The position numbers were made by a program, and so were the translations under genes. Below are positions 300 to 64,000 of a DNA stretch of 64,000 nucleotides, one piece after another. The stretch lies in sequence record LC727699.1; one strand, 5' to 3'. The notes beneath the pieces are model-generated. The model was not told the DNA's origin and did not search any database. It saw nothing but the letters and a program-made list of their open reading frames with translations. The number at the start of each line of letters is the position of its first letter. Position 1 is the stretch's first letter.

Positions 300-2411
300 T
301 TAAAACCGCATATATGCGGGCTGATATGGTTTATACATACGTGTATCAAAGTCATTAAAATCAATTGCGATATCATACTTCTCAAATGATTCTTTTAGCA
401 TCTGATAAATGATTTTATTTTCATCAAAATTATTATTTTTATCAACATAACTTTCTAATGACTCTGTGATCTCAAATGGAGATTTAATACCCATAATAGC
501 TTCAACCATTGCCTGACTCCATTTTAGAATGTCATCTGACCTTGTTGAGATATTCGGTTCATCTTCTGTATCGAGAGTACATTGATATACGACTGTTTGT
601 GAATCCTGACCTTTACGGTAAATTCGAGCAATAGCTTGTTCTAGAATGTAATGCCTAAACGGTGAATTAATTGTCACCATAGTATCAGCCATCGTCATAC
701 GGACCGCTGTTGAAAGGGAAGCATATGTAGCTACCAATGGATTTAATTTAGGGTCTTTCTCAAATCTACTGATTATTTGAGGTAAATTGTCATTGGTTTT
801 ACCATACACCACCGCCGGATGCATACCTAATTTATTGGTGTACTTATCAACAGTATCAACAACCTCAACAAACGATGTAAATGCAATCGTTTTCTTCATA
901 GTTGATTCAGTGATACCAACCCAGTCAATATACGGTACCATGTCCACATGGCACTGAATGCGTTTAGCACCTAAAACCCTTCCCAAACATTCACCTTGTA
1001 TCTTTAGCATAACGTATTTTATAACTGATTTAATATCTCTAAAAGCAGCTATTTCATTACGAGGTAAAGTTGGCTCTATAAACATTTTTTCATATTGGTT
1101 AGATTCTTTAATTTCTTCACCAATGTATCGCGGGTCTTGATTCTTCTGAATTATTTTAATCAAATTCTTATAGCGAGCGAAACCATCTTTCTGCGCCTGG
1201 GTCTTAAGAGAGTTCTCGTGTATCGCCATTAGTTTAGCCCAATACTTCTCATCTTCTGGTCGGCGCGCAGCATAGAACTTTACACGTTCTCTAATAAAAG
1301 CTTCACAATCACGTTTAATGGCATTAAGAGTATACTGTGATCCATTTGGTATCTTGATACGATACGCTTTTATCCTCGGTGGTAAAACCTCAGTATCTTT
1401 CTTTTCAATGACGTACGCAATTAACCCAAAGCGATGTTGGACAATATCTAATCCTTTCTGTGTCTCTTTTCCAAATGCTTTCTTAAAACGTTCTTCAACC
1501 TCATTGGTGAAGAGATCGTCTAATACTCTTAATGCACTTACTAATTCAGAACCAAGTGCTTTAACAGGGGTACCTGACGCTAATAATCTGTTATTAGAGT
1601 TAGACATAAAACATATTTGCTGGAACTTAAGAGATTGTGCAGAATTAGGATCGTTCATATTGTGTGATTCATCCAGAATCACCGTAATGTTCTTACCTTT
1701 GAATATACCGCTTCTTAATAGATCAATTATTTTATCTTGCGCCTGGTAATGGGATATAAGTATTCTTTGACCGTTGTAGGCTTTATCATCAATGGTCGAC
1801 CATACTTTTTGTCTTTCCTTATACATCTCAATAATAGATGGCTTCCATATTAGATCAATAGACTTCTTTTCACAAACAACTATAATGATATCCGACTCAA
1901 CCATTTCAGCAATAGCCATCGTCATGAATGTCTTACCAGTACCAGGTTTACCTGCAACAATATCACCACGTAAACCATACTGGTCAATTCGATAATTATA
2001 ATTTTCAAAATAAGCTTTTTGAGACCCATCTGGTGTAAATGTCAATTTGTCTAACATCTTGAAATTGAGTCTACCTGGTACAGAGTTGGTATCTACAGGA
2101 CGAGTATTTTTTAACCAGGTATATTGAAGCATTGCTTCACGGATGGCATTAACAGTTTTAATAGAGATGTATCTACTTCTATAATTCTTTACTGCTTCTA
2201 GCATGTAATATATTTCAGGAGCAAAGAATTTATAAAATGAAATACTACGACGACTAACCGTGTTAAATAACTGCGTAGCTAATTTAGTGGTTCGCCAATA
2301 CTTGTTAATATCTCTAATGAATGCAGCACCATCAAAACCACTGATGATAATTTCTTGATCAGTTTCAGTAATTGATAGCGAGCCCATTATCTTCCTAAAT
2401 GAGTCTATCAT
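300..2411 (-). CDS. SF2 (SNF2-like) helicase
   Basis: Walker A GKPGTGKT, Walker B ILDESH, motif III ASGTP, motif VI EQAIARIYRKGQ. Confidence 0.9.
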   Translation of the reverse strand: MIDSFRKIMGSLSITETDQEIIISGFDGAAFIRDINKYWRTTKLATQLFNTVSRRSISFYKFFAPEIYYMLEAVKNYRSRYISIKTVNAIREAMLQYTWLKNTRPVDTNSVPGRLNFKMLDKLTFTPDGSQKAYFENYNYRIDQYGLRGDIVAGKPGTGKTFMTMAIAEMVESDIIIVVCEKKSIDLIWKPSIIEMYKERQKVWSTIDDKAYNGQRILISHYQAQDKIIDLLRSGIFKGKNITVILDESHNMNDPNSAQSLKFQQICFMSNSNNRLLASGTPVKALGSELVSALRVLDDLFTNEVEERFKKAFGKETQKGLDIVQHRFGLIAYVIEKKDTEVLPPRIKAYRIKIPNGSQYTLNAIKRDCEAFIRERVKFYAARRPEDEKYWAKLMAIHENSLKTQAQKDGFARYKNLIKIIQKNQDPRYIGEEIKESNQYEKMFIEPTLPRNEIAAFRDIKSVIKYVMLKIQGECLGRVLGAKRIQCHVDMVPYIDWVGITESTMKKTIAFTSFVEVVDTVDKYTNKLGMHPAVVYGKTNDNLPQIISRFEKDPKLNPLVATYASLSTAVRMTMADTMVTINSPFRHYILEQAIARIYRKGQDSQTVVYQCTLDTEDEPNISTRSDDILKWSQAMVEAIMGIKSPFEITESLESYVDKNNNFDENKIIYQMLKESFEKYDIAIDFNDFDTRMYKPYQPAYMRF

Positions 2412-3739: not shown

Positions 3740-3768
3740 CCCTCCCCTTTATTGGGGAGGGATTATTT
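3740..3768 (+). terminator. Intrinsic terminator
   Basis: CCCTCCCC-TTTATT-GGGGAGGG with AT/T tail. Confidence 0.75.
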
Positions 3769-11445: not shown

Positions 11446-11500
11446 GCCCTCCCTTCGGGGAGGGCTATTGCACTAAATTTTATTTGAGATCTACATTATA
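11446..11500 (+). promoter_or_regulatory. Terminator plus early-promoter cassette (class B, variant core TACATTAT)
   Basis: GCCCTCCC-TTCG-GGGAGGGC then CTAAATTTTATTTGAGATC; 45 bp identical to 26564-26608. Confidence 0.75.
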
Positions 11501-53622: not shown

Positions 53623-53747
53623 TATGTAAAGAATACCCAAATCGGGATCTCCCGGACTATCTCCCTTCAGCGTTCCCGTCCGCAAATGAAGGTGCCGCCG
53701 AGATCCCACCTATTGATAATGCCCTCCCTTCGGGGAGGGCATTATTT
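53623..53747 (+). ncRNA. Candidate pseudoknotted RNA or attenuator leader
   Basis: TATG start, 8-bp P1 enclosing an H-type pseudoknot, then a UUCG terminator. Confidence 0.5.
53717..53747 (+). terminator. Intrinsic terminator
   Basis: TAATGCCCTCCC-TTCG-GGGAGGGCATTA followed by TTT. Confidence 0.85.
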
Positions 53748-53783
53748 CGCTTAAGCCTATTTATTTTATTATAAGGAGTGAAA

Positions 53784-59295: not shown

Positions 59296-59371
<76 letters not shown>

Positions 59372-60329: not shown

Positions 60330-61337
60330 TTAATCAATGATTAATGGTGCTAGTTTTACCTGATAGATACCTGATAACAATTGGCTTTTCAACATATATG
60401 CTCCACCACCAACTGGCATTTTAGATCCACCTACAATGATCATGCTATTATCCGGACCTTTAGCTATAGATGAAATATTAAGGAATCCGATACCTAGTTC
60501 AAATGGTTCAGCCCATTTCCGGCGCCTAATATTAAAACGTTGTGCAAACATTTTAGTTACACCGCCGACATCAACAGCGTTAAGGTAATTAAAATAGTCC
60601 CCATCTACATAACCATTACCTTGCCAGATTGTTCCTTTATCAGCAGGTATAATCATCCAAGGTGTTTGCTCCCATATTAAGGTAGTTGCATTATATCGAT
60701 AAACTTCAAGATTAGGTATGTTCTTTGTATTATCCCAACCACCAAAATGGTAAAAGTAACCATTATAAAAGAATAACTGTTGACCTGAACGAGCACCACC
60801 TGAATAGTCTTGCCCGCTAAGCCAAGACTTACTTGATGGTTTTAATCGCATTGCGTTTACGCCAATTGGGTTAACGCATAGAATAAGATCATTACCATCT
60901 GATGCGGAGGCTGTGCCCCAAAGTGGTACGGGACCACTATATCGCTCAACCCTATTGCCTGTAGCTATATCAAAATGTTGTATAAAGTTAGATGTTCCCG
61001 TACCACCATTACCAGCCGAGTTCCATCCAGTAATACCACCATAAACAATAAAGTTATTCTTATGTAATGTCCCAAATCCTAAAGATACCCCTGGTAAGAA
61101 TGTTCCAGAAGCAGTTGCACCTATATCGGCAAATGGCGATATGGTAAAACGTCTGAACACAGTTGCAGCTGTTTGTCCTTCAGTATGATGACCAGATCCA
61201 ACATACAGTGTATTTCCATCCACATATGACATTGTACCAGCTAACGCTACAGGTAGATCACCTAATTTAATAATTTCATTAAATCCAACCAAGGGTAACT
61301 CTTCGCCTATATCTGGTGATAATAGTAATTCAAACAT
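60330..61337 (-). CDS. Kelch-repeat beta-propeller protein
   Basis: Repeats such as LHKNNFIVYGG, FYNGYFYHFGG.....VYRYN....W and DNSMIIVGG. Confidence 0.75.
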   Translation of the reverse strand: MFELLLSPDIGEELPLVGFNEIIKLGDLPVALAGTMSYVDGNTLYVGSGHHTEGQTAATVFRRFTISPFADIGATASGTFLPGVSLGFGTLHKNNFIVYGGITGWNSAGNGGTGTSNFIQHFDIATGNRVERYSGPVPLWGTASASDGNDLILCVNPIGVNAMRLKPSSKSWLSGQDYSGGARSGQQLFFYNGYFYHFGGWDNTKNIPNLEVYRYNATTLIWEQTPWMIIPADKGTIWQGNGYVDGDYFNYLNAVDVGGVTKMFAQRFNIRRRKWAEPFELGIGFLNISSIAKGPDNSMIIVGGSKMPVGGGAYMLKSQLLSGIYQVKLAPLIID

Positions 61338-61421: not shown

Positions 61422-61497
<76 letters not shown>

Positions 61498-63179: not shown

Positions 63180-63632
63180 TCAACGTGGCCATTGTAAAGA
63201 AGTTATCTTATTACCATTAATGTAGACATCGGTCACTTCGCACCAATCATTAATTCTGTGCTCAATAATTGGCACATCATTTCGGCCAGCCACTCCAATC
63301 ATATTCCATTTAACATAAATATTCATTAGATCAATTGTTAATTTCTCTTTTATGAGTTTAGGAGAAATTAATTTAATATTATTAATGTTAAAGAAGTAAT
63401 TATTAACTTCTTCTAAATATTCATTAGTATTAGTAGTACTAACTTTACCTTCATGTTCAAGTGAAGATGGTTTATTTTGATTTACAATATTATTCACTAG
63501 ACTTCTTAAAACGGCGCTTGCCCTACCAGCTTCACGTCTTTTATATTTATCATAGTCTTTTACATTAGCTGCAATTTTATCAAATTCTTTTTGGGCATAG
63601 ATTAACCCTGGTAAAAGTTCATTCTTAATCAT
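63180..63632 (-). CDS. Hypothetical protein
   Basis: 150-aa ORF; no motif recognised. Confidence 0.75.
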   Translation of the reverse strand: MIKNELLPGLIYAQKEFDKIAANVKDYDKYKRREAGRASAVLRSLVNNIVNQNKPSSLEHEGKVSTTNTNEYLEEVNNYFFNINNIKLISPKLIKEKLTIDLMNIYVKWNMIGVAGRNDVPIIEHRINDWCEVTDVYINGNKITSLQWPR

Positions 63633-63689
63633 TTTATAATTACTCTATGTTATTTGTACATATTTTAACATACTCACGTAAAAACAAAA

Positions 63690-63833
63690 TATAAAGCCTC
63701 CCCGAAGGGAGGCGATATATCGTCATTAATGCCCAGCAAAGAGTTTTACTCTCTGGGAGCCAGTTGGAAGGGGGACTGGCTCCGATTTATTATGACTAAT
63801 GTAGAAACGAGGGGGAGGGATCATTTCTACATA
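63690..63833 (-). ncRNA. Candidate sRNA with two C-rich (anti-SD-like) loops, about 145 nt
   Basis: TATG start, two perfect 9-bp stems with C-rich loops, a third stem and a UUCG terminator with T tail. Confidence 0.6.
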
Positions 63834-63852
63834 TCATTACATACTCAGTAAG

Positions 63853-64000
63853 TTATTCTTCAATACCAATGACCGTATTGCGTTCATTGGTGTTCTCTAC
63901 GGTTGAACCACTTGGGAAGCTACTGACAGATGCTTGCATTAGTTTCAACATGTCGATAGCAAATACTCGATATGTAGATTCAACCTTAGCGTCGTCGTAC
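63853..64000 (-). CDS. Hypothetical protein, partial C-terminus
   Basis: ...YDDAKVESTYRVFAIDMLKLMQASVSSFPSGSTVENTNERNTVIGIEE*. Confidence 0.65.
   Translation of the reverse strand, partial: YDDAKVESTYRVFAIDMLKLMQASVSSFPSGSTVENTNERNTVIGIEE

Follow-up and report, generated by a model that had tools for sequence, protein, structure and literature searches.

A phiKZ-like jumbo phage is the source of the 64,000-nucleotide stretch of DNA from sequence record LC727699.1 that was analysed in this study (hereafter, the window). Its minus strand carries, at positions 63688 to 63830, a small RNA of about 141 to 143 nt, the orthologue of the phiKZ transcript TU237, which is the non-coding RNA (ncRNA) candidate '5'UTR_PHIKZ302'. 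This RNA is small, very stable, non-coding and made late, and its structure, which is very probably conserved, displays two C-rich hairpin loops (L1 and L2), the second of which holds an 8-nt sequence that is invariant across three phage genera. We tentatively propose, while granting the idea somewhat less than an even chance, that the RNA acts in trans and that its loops base-pair with purine-rich sequences resembling ribosome-binding sites (RBSs). The transcript itself has already been published; judging from the literature, the novelty lies in the conserved fold, in the invariant loop, in the additional motifs of the sister genera and in the restriction to phages of one host.

Transcript boundaries in phiKZ and in the window

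When searched by blastn, the segment from 63500 to 64000 matched Pseudomonas jumbo phages only. The locus is 100% identical to PA02, OMKO1 and several others and about 94 to 98% identical to PA7, KTN4, SL2 and phiKZ; relative to phiKZ positions 273959 to 274163 (minus strand), the RNA locus is collinear, with 94.1% identity over 205 nt.

In phiKZ, TU237 was mapped by ONT-cappable-seq as a 141-nt small intergenic transcript upstream of PHIKZ302, with its 3' end at the terminator T131 (Putzeys et al. 2024, Microlife, PMC10914365). It is abundant, was confirmed by northern blotting, on which the short form is the dominant species, and has its own transcription start site (TSS) in the cap-enriched library (PMC10914365). 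The TSS of its late promoter, P144, at 274148(-), the transcription termination site of T131 at 274007(-) and the northern probe JVO-21409 are given in Putzeys Tables S5/S7 and in Table S7 of bioRxiv 10.1101/2023.10.13.562163. All data on detection of the RNA are from phiKZ, and the window coordinates were obtained by alignment: the TSS falls on 63829, the T of TATGT, the RNA ends at 63688 and the equivalent of a second late promoter, P143, lies at 63658, all on the minus strand. Between phiKZ and the window there is no difference in the TATGT at the mapped TSS or anywhere in the terminator. The RNA is almost certainly a real transcript, and a reading made earlier from the letters of the window (the sequence-only reading), which had called a discrete, non-coding late transcript of about 145 nt here, agrees well with the phiKZ orthologue.

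The late-promoter core, TATGTAATGATATG, occupies 63830 to 63843 (minus strand) and contains the tandem TATG that the sequence-only reading had pointed out, with the distal copy at 63843-63840 and the proximal one at 63833-63830. According to the alignment with the phiKZ TSS, transcription starts at the second TATG (63829/63830). This proximal TATG is invariant in the three genera, and phiKZ and fnug have TATC in place of the distal copy. At the other end of the RNA, the intrinsic terminator GCCUCCC-UUCG-GGGAGGC plus UUUAUAUU (63688 to 63713, minus strand) is also present as had been described. It combines a G+C-rich hairpin with a U-rich tract (TTTATATTTT in DNA, UUUAUAUUUU in RNA), as expected of an intrinsic terminator; its stem has an unpaired probability of 0.0 in the predicted ensemble, and its 3' end at 63688 equals that of T131.

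In phiKZ, T131 also ends the gp304-gp303 operon (TU238), part of the P144 transcripts reads through into gp302 and the tRNAs (TU233-236), and the TSS of P143, at 273977, lies just 3' of T131 (Putzeys tables). The corresponding late TATG promoter of the window (63658 to 63662, minus strand) is located between the terminator and the gp302 start codon. The presence of this separate late promoter argues for a stand-alone gene rather than the 5' leader implied by the label used in the phiKZ paper ('5'UTR-derived'). In PhiPA3 the RNA is present without adjacent tRNAs or gp302.

Fold and compensatory changes

The minus-strand RNA has a predicted minimum free energy (MFE) of -60.1 kcal/mol, as compared to -35.2 +/- 3.9 for 200 dinucleotide shuffles (z = -6.45); for the plus strand, z = -3.7. 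Folding from G63830 with RNAfold yields a hairpin, P1, a helix, P2, that encloses two further hairpins, P3 and P4, and then the terminator. P1 (63801 to 63830) is a 10-bp hairpin that is flush with the 5' end and carries L1, UCCCUCCCCC, at 63820-63811. The first stem of the sequence-only reading, ATGTAGAAA/TTTCTACAT, exists, but the 16-nt loop assigned to it does not, as the stem extends inward from G63830 through U.G, G-C and A-U pairs, leaving the 10-nt L1. P3 (63756 to 63783) is a 9-bp hairpin with L2, CCCCCUUCCA, at 63774-63765, and here the second stem (GGAGCCAGT/ACTGGCTCC) and its loop (CCCCCTTCCA) were found as proposed. P4 (63737 to 63755) is the hairpin CAGAGAGU-AAA-ACUCUUUG; it corrects the third stem of the sequence-only reading to this continuous helix, the outer CCCAG/CTGGG pairing being lost in PA7_Y12 and in the other genera. 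Missed previously was P2 (GUCAU/AUGAC; 63796-63792 with 63726-63722), which encloses P3 and P4 and thereby makes 63722 to 63796 a three-way junction (all on the minus strand). P1 begins at +1 and the terminator hairpin closes the 3' end, both being features of a stable RNA.

Independent MFE folds gave the same architecture in Phikzvirus and Pawinskivirus. For PhiPA3, P1, P3 and P4 were recovered, but the junction was paired differently, and its P2 is therefore a manual assignment. In a MAFFT alignment, P1, P3 and P4 have standard pairs in 98.1% of their cells, versus 38-49% when the partners are slid by 1-3 columns, and four pairs within these helices are changed on both sides. RNAalifold, applied to eight sequences from the three genera, recovered the same three helices with five pairs changed on both sides. 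Because of a 10-nt junction in Phikzvirus, automatic alignment failed at P2, and a three-genus helix table was made manually. In it, compensatory changes occur at 10 of the 39 pair positions: three in P1; four in P2, among Pawinskivirus and PhiPA3; two in P3, where the loop-adjacent pairs covary (U-A/C-G and G-C/A-U/C-G) and the loop is kept; and one in P4 (A-U/G-C/U-A). A covariance model, R1, was built from the Phikzvirus sequences and gives the window RNA 184.9 bits; the R1-based alignment was left out of the pair counts because the Pawinskivirus P4 and P2 strands fell in an insert. With six to eight distinct sequences from three clades the sample is small, and covariation provides good qualitative support rather than a formal statistical test. 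Across the three genera, then, the loops are kept and the stems covary. Of the three outcomes that the sequence-only reading had named as refuting it, two, the lack of a transcript and a lack of loop conservation, are thus contradicted, the first by the phiKZ data.

The C-rich loops

Both L1 and L2 have a predicted unpaired probability of 1.0 in the ensemble. The window is 34.8% G+C, and 10-mers with at least seven C and no G occur in about 25 places on both strands, most of which are terminator arms; two are the hairpin loops of the small RNA. L2 reads [C/U]CCCCUUCCA in Phikzvirus and AACCCUUCCA in Pawinskivirus and PhiPA3. As the 8-nt sequence CCCUUCCA is common to both versions, it is invariant across the three genera, in contrast to the neighbouring stem pairs and the junctions, which diverge. 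The Phikzvirus L1 is UCC[C/U]UCCCCC, that of Pawinskivirus UCACUCCU and that of PhiPA3 CCUACUCCU, with a CUCC/CUUCC core that is kept; that of phiKZ, UCCUUCCCCC, is one base off the L1 of the window.

Further single-stranded C/U-rich motifs are found in the sister genera: CCCCUCCUUUC in Pawinskivirus only, and UUCUCCUUG in Pawinskivirus and PhiPA3. An extra single-stranded linker, UUCUCCUUGUUGUGUUGAUG, is conserved between Pawinskivirus (fragment positions 1655-1674) and PhiPA3 (fragment positions 1001-1020). We take its complement, AACACAACAAGGAGAA, to resemble the Pseudomonas Hfq/Crc 'CA motif' followed by a Shine-Dalgarno (SD) sequence. Inspection of the folds by reading showed no conserved partner for the loops, either in the terminator of the RNA itself or in its junctions.

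The 16S gene of P. paraeruginosa ATCC 9027 ends GGAUCACCUCCUUA, and the sequence-only reading had likened the first loop to this tail (GAUCACCUCC). The likeness survives in part. In Phikzvirus the 'GAU' beside L1 belongs to the stem, where it is replaced by AAU in some sequences and the opposite strand compensates (G-C to A-U); because it is paired and covaries, this portion of the likeness is coincidental. In contrast, the Pawinskivirus L1 and the CCUCCUU of the linker closely resemble the 16S tail, L1 being nearly UCACCUCCU, and thus come closer to the real tail than the loop on which the comparison was based.

Evolutionary constraint and phylogenetic range

Among nine Phikzvirus genomes, only 8% of the columns in the RNA are variable, without indels. 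The corresponding values are 19%, with indels, for the spacer to gp302, 22% for gp302 and 59% for the 3' end of gp303. The sole sense open reading frame (ORF) lying wholly inside the RNA encodes 32 aa, starting at the ATG at 63824, 6 nt from the TSS. The sequence-only reading had stated that no RBS-led ORF is present, which is right in that there is no SD sequence, although an ORF does begin there. An ATG-to-stop frame of 32 codons so near the TSS could in principle yield a small protein. However, besides having no SD sequence, its ATG is ATA in phiKZ, fnug, 124.01 and T2P, the frame is absent in Pawinskivirus and PhiPA3, and the substitutions are of the compensatory kind expected of RNA stems, so that a role for this peptide is barely credible.

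The element also occurs in Pawinskivirus (PS119XW, phiLBG22, phiHQ, PA1C, BRkr and HPP-Temi) and in the Miltoncavirus PhiPA3. The genera are only about 70-75% identical over the element. Its place is always directly after the gp303 homologue. All three genera infect P. aeruginosa, and the element was found only in such phages. In 201phi2-1, Viktualia and Phabio, gp303 homologues were detected by tblastn, and the spacers downstream lack the element; the phages without it infect other pseudomonads (P. fluorescens, P. chlororaphis or P. syringae). Pattern scans of IMG/VR and JGI metagenomes returned only PA7, PhiPA3 and chance matches that R1 rejected, and no paralogue was detected in the window, where weak R1 matches were driven by terminators. 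Restriction to P. aeruginosa phages fits a host-directed role. A different conserved, short TATG-to-terminator unit, TATATGTAACACCTTGAATTACTTGATTTT...ACCCAC(A/G)GCTTAGTCTAACTAGGTTGTGGGTTTTATG, follows the gp303 homologue in 201phi2-1 (fragment 560-700, minus strand) and Viktualia (fragment 2430-2520). It has no C-rich loops and may be another small RNA at the syntenic position.

The tRNA-Leu/tRNA-Pro pair, an arrangement that blastn showed to be common to Phikzvirus and Pawinskivirus only, comes after gp302 in the former and directly after the element in the latter. This proximity bears on whether the element might be a cis-acting attenuator, i.e., a leader that senses a ligand, a protein or a tRNA and sets T131 read-through into gp302 and the tRNAs. 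Two classes of P144 transcripts, short and read-through, exist in phiKZ, and conditional termination was suggested by Putzeys et al. (PMC10914365). However, no antiterminator fold was predicted, the terminator stem being paired at a probability of about 1; no upstream segment complements the terminator 5' arm; a separate late promoter 3' of the terminator serves gp302 and the tRNAs; and PhiPA3 retains the RNA with no tRNA within 900 nt. We consider attenuation quite improbable.

Another local explanation is that the element is a structured spacer or by-product with no function in trans. It might serve as a protective 3' untranslated region (UTR) for the gp304-gp303 mRNA and insulate it from the gp302-tRNA unit, and the short RNA would arise merely because a late promoter happens to lie upstream of the terminator of the upstream operon. 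That T131 also terminates the gp304-gp303 operon, that some P144 transcripts continue into gp302 and the tRNAs, and that the element is invariably 3' of a gp303 homologue all agree with this explanation, as do the occupation of the same place in 201phi2-1 and Viktualia by a different short unit devoid of C-rich loops and the existence in phiKZ of 17 such short promoter-to-terminator units (Putzeys et al.). On the other hand, a terminator hairpin alone would suffice as a 3' UTR stabiliser, while here the whole three-way junction is kept by compensatory changes; the 8-nt loop sequence is invariant across genera that have diverged considerably over the element; the promoter of the short form is itself conserved in the three genera; and the short RNA is dominant and abundant on northern blots. 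A purely local role is therefore unlikely in our view.

Proposed pairing with ribosome-binding sites

The mode of action that we favour, albeit with reserve, would operate as follows. The phage's own RNA polymerase transcribes the RNA late, from the conserved TATG promoter (63829/30) to the intrinsic terminator (63688). The P1 and P3 loops display single-stranded C/U-rich sequence resembling the anti-Shine-Dalgarno (aSD) tail of 16S rRNA and could pair with GGAG, GGAAGG or GGGAGG, that is, with RBSs. The most likely targets would be G-rich host mRNAs, and early phage mRNAs less so, with pairing lowering the translation or the stability of the target. Action in trans, base-pairing as its mode and RBSs as the targets are what we infer from the exposed, conserved loops.

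Duplexes predicted between the loops and translation initiation regions (TIRs) of the window average -4.8 to -4.9 kcal/mol, as against -2.4 to -2.9 for sites internal to coding sequences (CDS); the true 16S tail gives -5.9. The same gap between TIRs and CDS was obtained with a 50-kb phiKZ chunk. In a functional sense, which implies no homology, the RNA can be placed with the aSD-loop class, since it is predicted to expose a C/U-rich loop motif complementary to GGAG. RBS occlusion by the loops is plausible on these models.

Several observations weigh against this proposal. First, complementarity alone is weak evidence because a C-rich sequence pairs with nearly any G-rich RNA of a host with 66% GC; even 16S rRNA gives predicted values of -12 to -17 kcal/mol with the loops, and the sites involved change from one genus to another. 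In addition, the L1 of phiKZ lacks the CCUCC core, which also detracts from the 16S-tail likeness discussed above. Second, among 170 phage TIRs (110 from the window and 60 from phiKZ 1-50000), no outstanding target emerged, the best reaching about -13 kcal/mol, and the SD sequences of the phage are short (AAGGA, GAGG) and lie in an AT-rich context. If the model is right, host G-rich sequences are therefore the likelier partners. Third, late in phiKZ infection, phage mRNA reportedly replaces host mRNA to a large extent, and silencing host RBSs would then be worth less. Fourth, synthesis of the RNA takes place in the phage nucleus, and the proposal has to assume that it is exported. Fifth, the 3' tail of the RNA, UUUAUAUU, is an interrupted U tract and a poor tail of the Hfq type. 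The 16S rRNA was also considered as a target in its own right; a V3 site, GGGAGGAAGGG, does exist, but the best site differs for each loop variant, and this candidate was dropped.

An extension of the likeness to the 16S tail is that the RNA is a mimic of that tail, with two to four aSD-like motifs on a conserved scaffold. It would act either as a late, global SD sponge or as a decoy for a host factor or defence system that recognises the tail. As a sponge, it would shift ribosomes from G-rich mRNAs with strong SD sequences (host or early) to the A-rich late phage mRNAs with weak ones. We regard such mimicry as improbable.

Terminator hairpins of the window

Fifteen near-identical terminators, (C)CCTCCC-TTCG-GGGAGGG(C) followed by TTTAT, were found by scanning the window, at 3741, 5368, 11448, 22922, 26122, 26566, 29627, 35975, 40183, 44675, 53191, 53723, 57081, 62527 and 63697. 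They look alike on both strands because they are palindromic, and they hold most of the GGGAGG/CCTCCC words of the window. The sequence-only reading had suggested that the RNA modulates phage terminators in trans, its loops pairing with the GGGAGG 3' arms and altering termination. The sequence GGGGAGGG at 3754 is indeed the 3' arm of a terminator, and L1 is perfectly complementary to it and to other such arms (e.g., at 11457, 26575, 29636, 53203 and 53732). However, this match is trivial, since each of the 15 terminators has in cis a 5' arm that the loops resemble. That arm lies 3-6 nt from the 3' arm, is transcribed first and sequesters it, so that an intermolecular duplex of 7-9 nt would be kinetically uncompetitive. 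Moreover, the L1 of Pawinskivirus and PhiPA3 (CACUCCU) no longer matches GGGAGGG. Modulation of terminators is accordingly very improbable.

Genomic surroundings

In phiKZ the locus is flanked by PHIKZ303 and PHIKZ302, with tRNA-Leu, tRNA-Pro and tRNA-Met downstream, and the neighbours are the same in the window. The 3' end of the gp303 homologue, a virion structural head protein, occupies 63853 to 64000 (minus strand) and ends with the stop codon TAA at 63855-63853, as judged from the ORF list and from the annotations of HUST_1 (an identical phage) and phiKZ. The gp302 homologue (150 aa; 63180 to 63632, minus strand) lies outside the RNA and is followed by the three tRNAs. Its start has no recognisable SD sequence (aataacatagagtaattataaaATG), and neither PHROG nor Pfam gave it a function. 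PHROG matches for gp302 and the neighbouring proteins were all of unknown function except for a 335-aa protein (virion structural), and no informative Pfam domain was detected in them. The virion structural protein at 60330-61337 (minus strand; PHROG 19623) shows weak, sub-threshold similarity to Kelch repeats.

A scan of the window at the Rfam gathering thresholds, together with tRNA calls, gave seven tRNAs. ARAGORN reports two tRNA-Asn(GTT) genes, at 59296-59371 and 61422-61497 (minus strand), and the window total of seven compares with the six quoted in the literature for phiKZ. Other published phiKZ ncRNA candidates, from the 5' UTRs of PHIKZ221, 234, 288, 289 and 297, map inside the window, at about 13507, about 20850, about 53126 and 53627-53748 on the plus strand and at about 60275 on the minus strand. 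The candidate at 53627-53748 forms a long closed stem with a terminator and exposes no C-rich loops.

According to a phage TnSeq preprint, orf184-304 is a dispensable arm that is probably involved in host interaction, and gp303 is non-essential (10.1101/2025.11.23.690004). In the same work, insertion in phiKZ orf302 abolished plaques on P. aeruginosa Env201, and gp302 was called a defence inhibitor (10.1101/2025.11.23.690004); this phenotype could be polar on the downstream tRNAs. A further rival reading takes the RNA for a decoy or sponge that binds protein and may counter host defence; its loops, instead of pairing with RNA, would sequester an RNA-binding protein of host or phage, or else a nuclease involved in defence. 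Loops that stay invariant on covarying stems suit a protein site as well as a pairing seed; the element is restricted to three genera that infect P. aeruginosa and is absent from relatives on other pseudomonads; it lies in the accessory arm, beside orf302; and the Pawinskivirus L1, UCACUCCU, is nearly the real 16S tail, UCACCUCCU. However, there is no candidate protein, the RNA resembles neither an Rfam family nor a known decoy, and the Env201 phenotype was assigned to orf302, with possible polarity on the tRNAs, and does not implicate the RNA. We consider a protein decoy to be about as unlikely as a purely local role.

Very little is known of what small RNAs do in virulent phages, and phiKZ is the model nucleus-forming jumbo phage, related to therapy candidates such as OMKO1. 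Its abundance, its validation and the support from comparative structure place this RNA among the best-defined starting points for asking whether jumbo phages control translation or counter host defences by RNA. If the loops act as aSD seeds, the mechanism in which a C-rich loop occludes an RBS would extend from Gram-positives and alphaproteobacteria to a phage. If mimicry of the 16S tail (as sponge or decoy) should be true, this would be the first such riboregulator in a virulent phage and a host-specific accessory function. The practical gain is modest, as the transcript is not new; the analysis contributes its fold, its invariant loop, the range of phages that carry it and an order of preference among the hypotheses.

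Relation to other small RNAs

TU237 of phiKZ is the same gene in a sister phage, with the same neighbours, late promoter, terminator and 141-nt length. The window RNA differs from it by one base in L1 and at two stem positions by compensatory changes from G-C to A-U. The phiKZ paper (PMC10914365) describes the transcript only, without conserved structure, loop motifs, wider distribution or function, and no function assigned to the TU237 RNA was found in the published literature.

At gathering thresholds, the Rfam scan of the whole window returned the seven tRNAs only. The best match in a permissive scan was ar14 (RF02344), with 19.9 bits versus a gathering threshold of 58.8 (E = 0.048 on 171 nt), which is sub-threshold noise. 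In the sub-threshold cmscan alignment, L1 and L2 coincide with the two ar14 loops that carry CCUCCUCCC, but that ultraconserved word is not in the window loops, since UCCCUCCCCC and CCCCCUUCCA are C/U-rich and of a different word. In NfeR1, a rhizobial 'cuckoo' small RNA (sRNA) of the ar14 family, three redundant aSD loops repress numerous mRNAs by acting on the RBS or close to it. Rhodobacter has RNAs of this type in CcsR1-4. Like NfeR1/ar14, the phage RNA has several hairpins that each expose a C-rich aSD motif. Unlike ar14, it carries the motif CCCUCCCCC or CCCCUUCC, forms a three-way junction, is phage-encoded and belongs to a gammaproteobacterial host. Nothing indicates common descent, and we consider ar14 to be the nearest functional analogue.

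In the UCCC-loop sRNAs of S. aureus (RNAIII, RsaE), which the sequence-only reading had named as an analogue, unpaired C-rich hairpin loops pair with SD regions, and no long seed is needed. The phage RNA likewise has C-rich hairpin loops that are predicted to be unpaired; it differs in its Gram-negative host and in being encoded by a virulent phage, and the RsaE and RNAIII families gave no Rfam match, even at E up to 10.

Among Pseudomonas phages, ncRNA1 and ncRNA2 of PAK_P3 are most abundant late in infection, have no TSS of their own and are processed from a 3' UTR (PMC10914365). The window RNA is, like these and like the 201phi2-1 sRNA upstream of tRNA-Leu, an abundant small phage RNA beside tRNA genes. 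In contrast to the PAK_P3 ncRNAs, with which it shares no similarity in sequence or structure, it has its own TSS; and in contrast to the syntenic unit of 201phi2-1, it presents C-rich loops.

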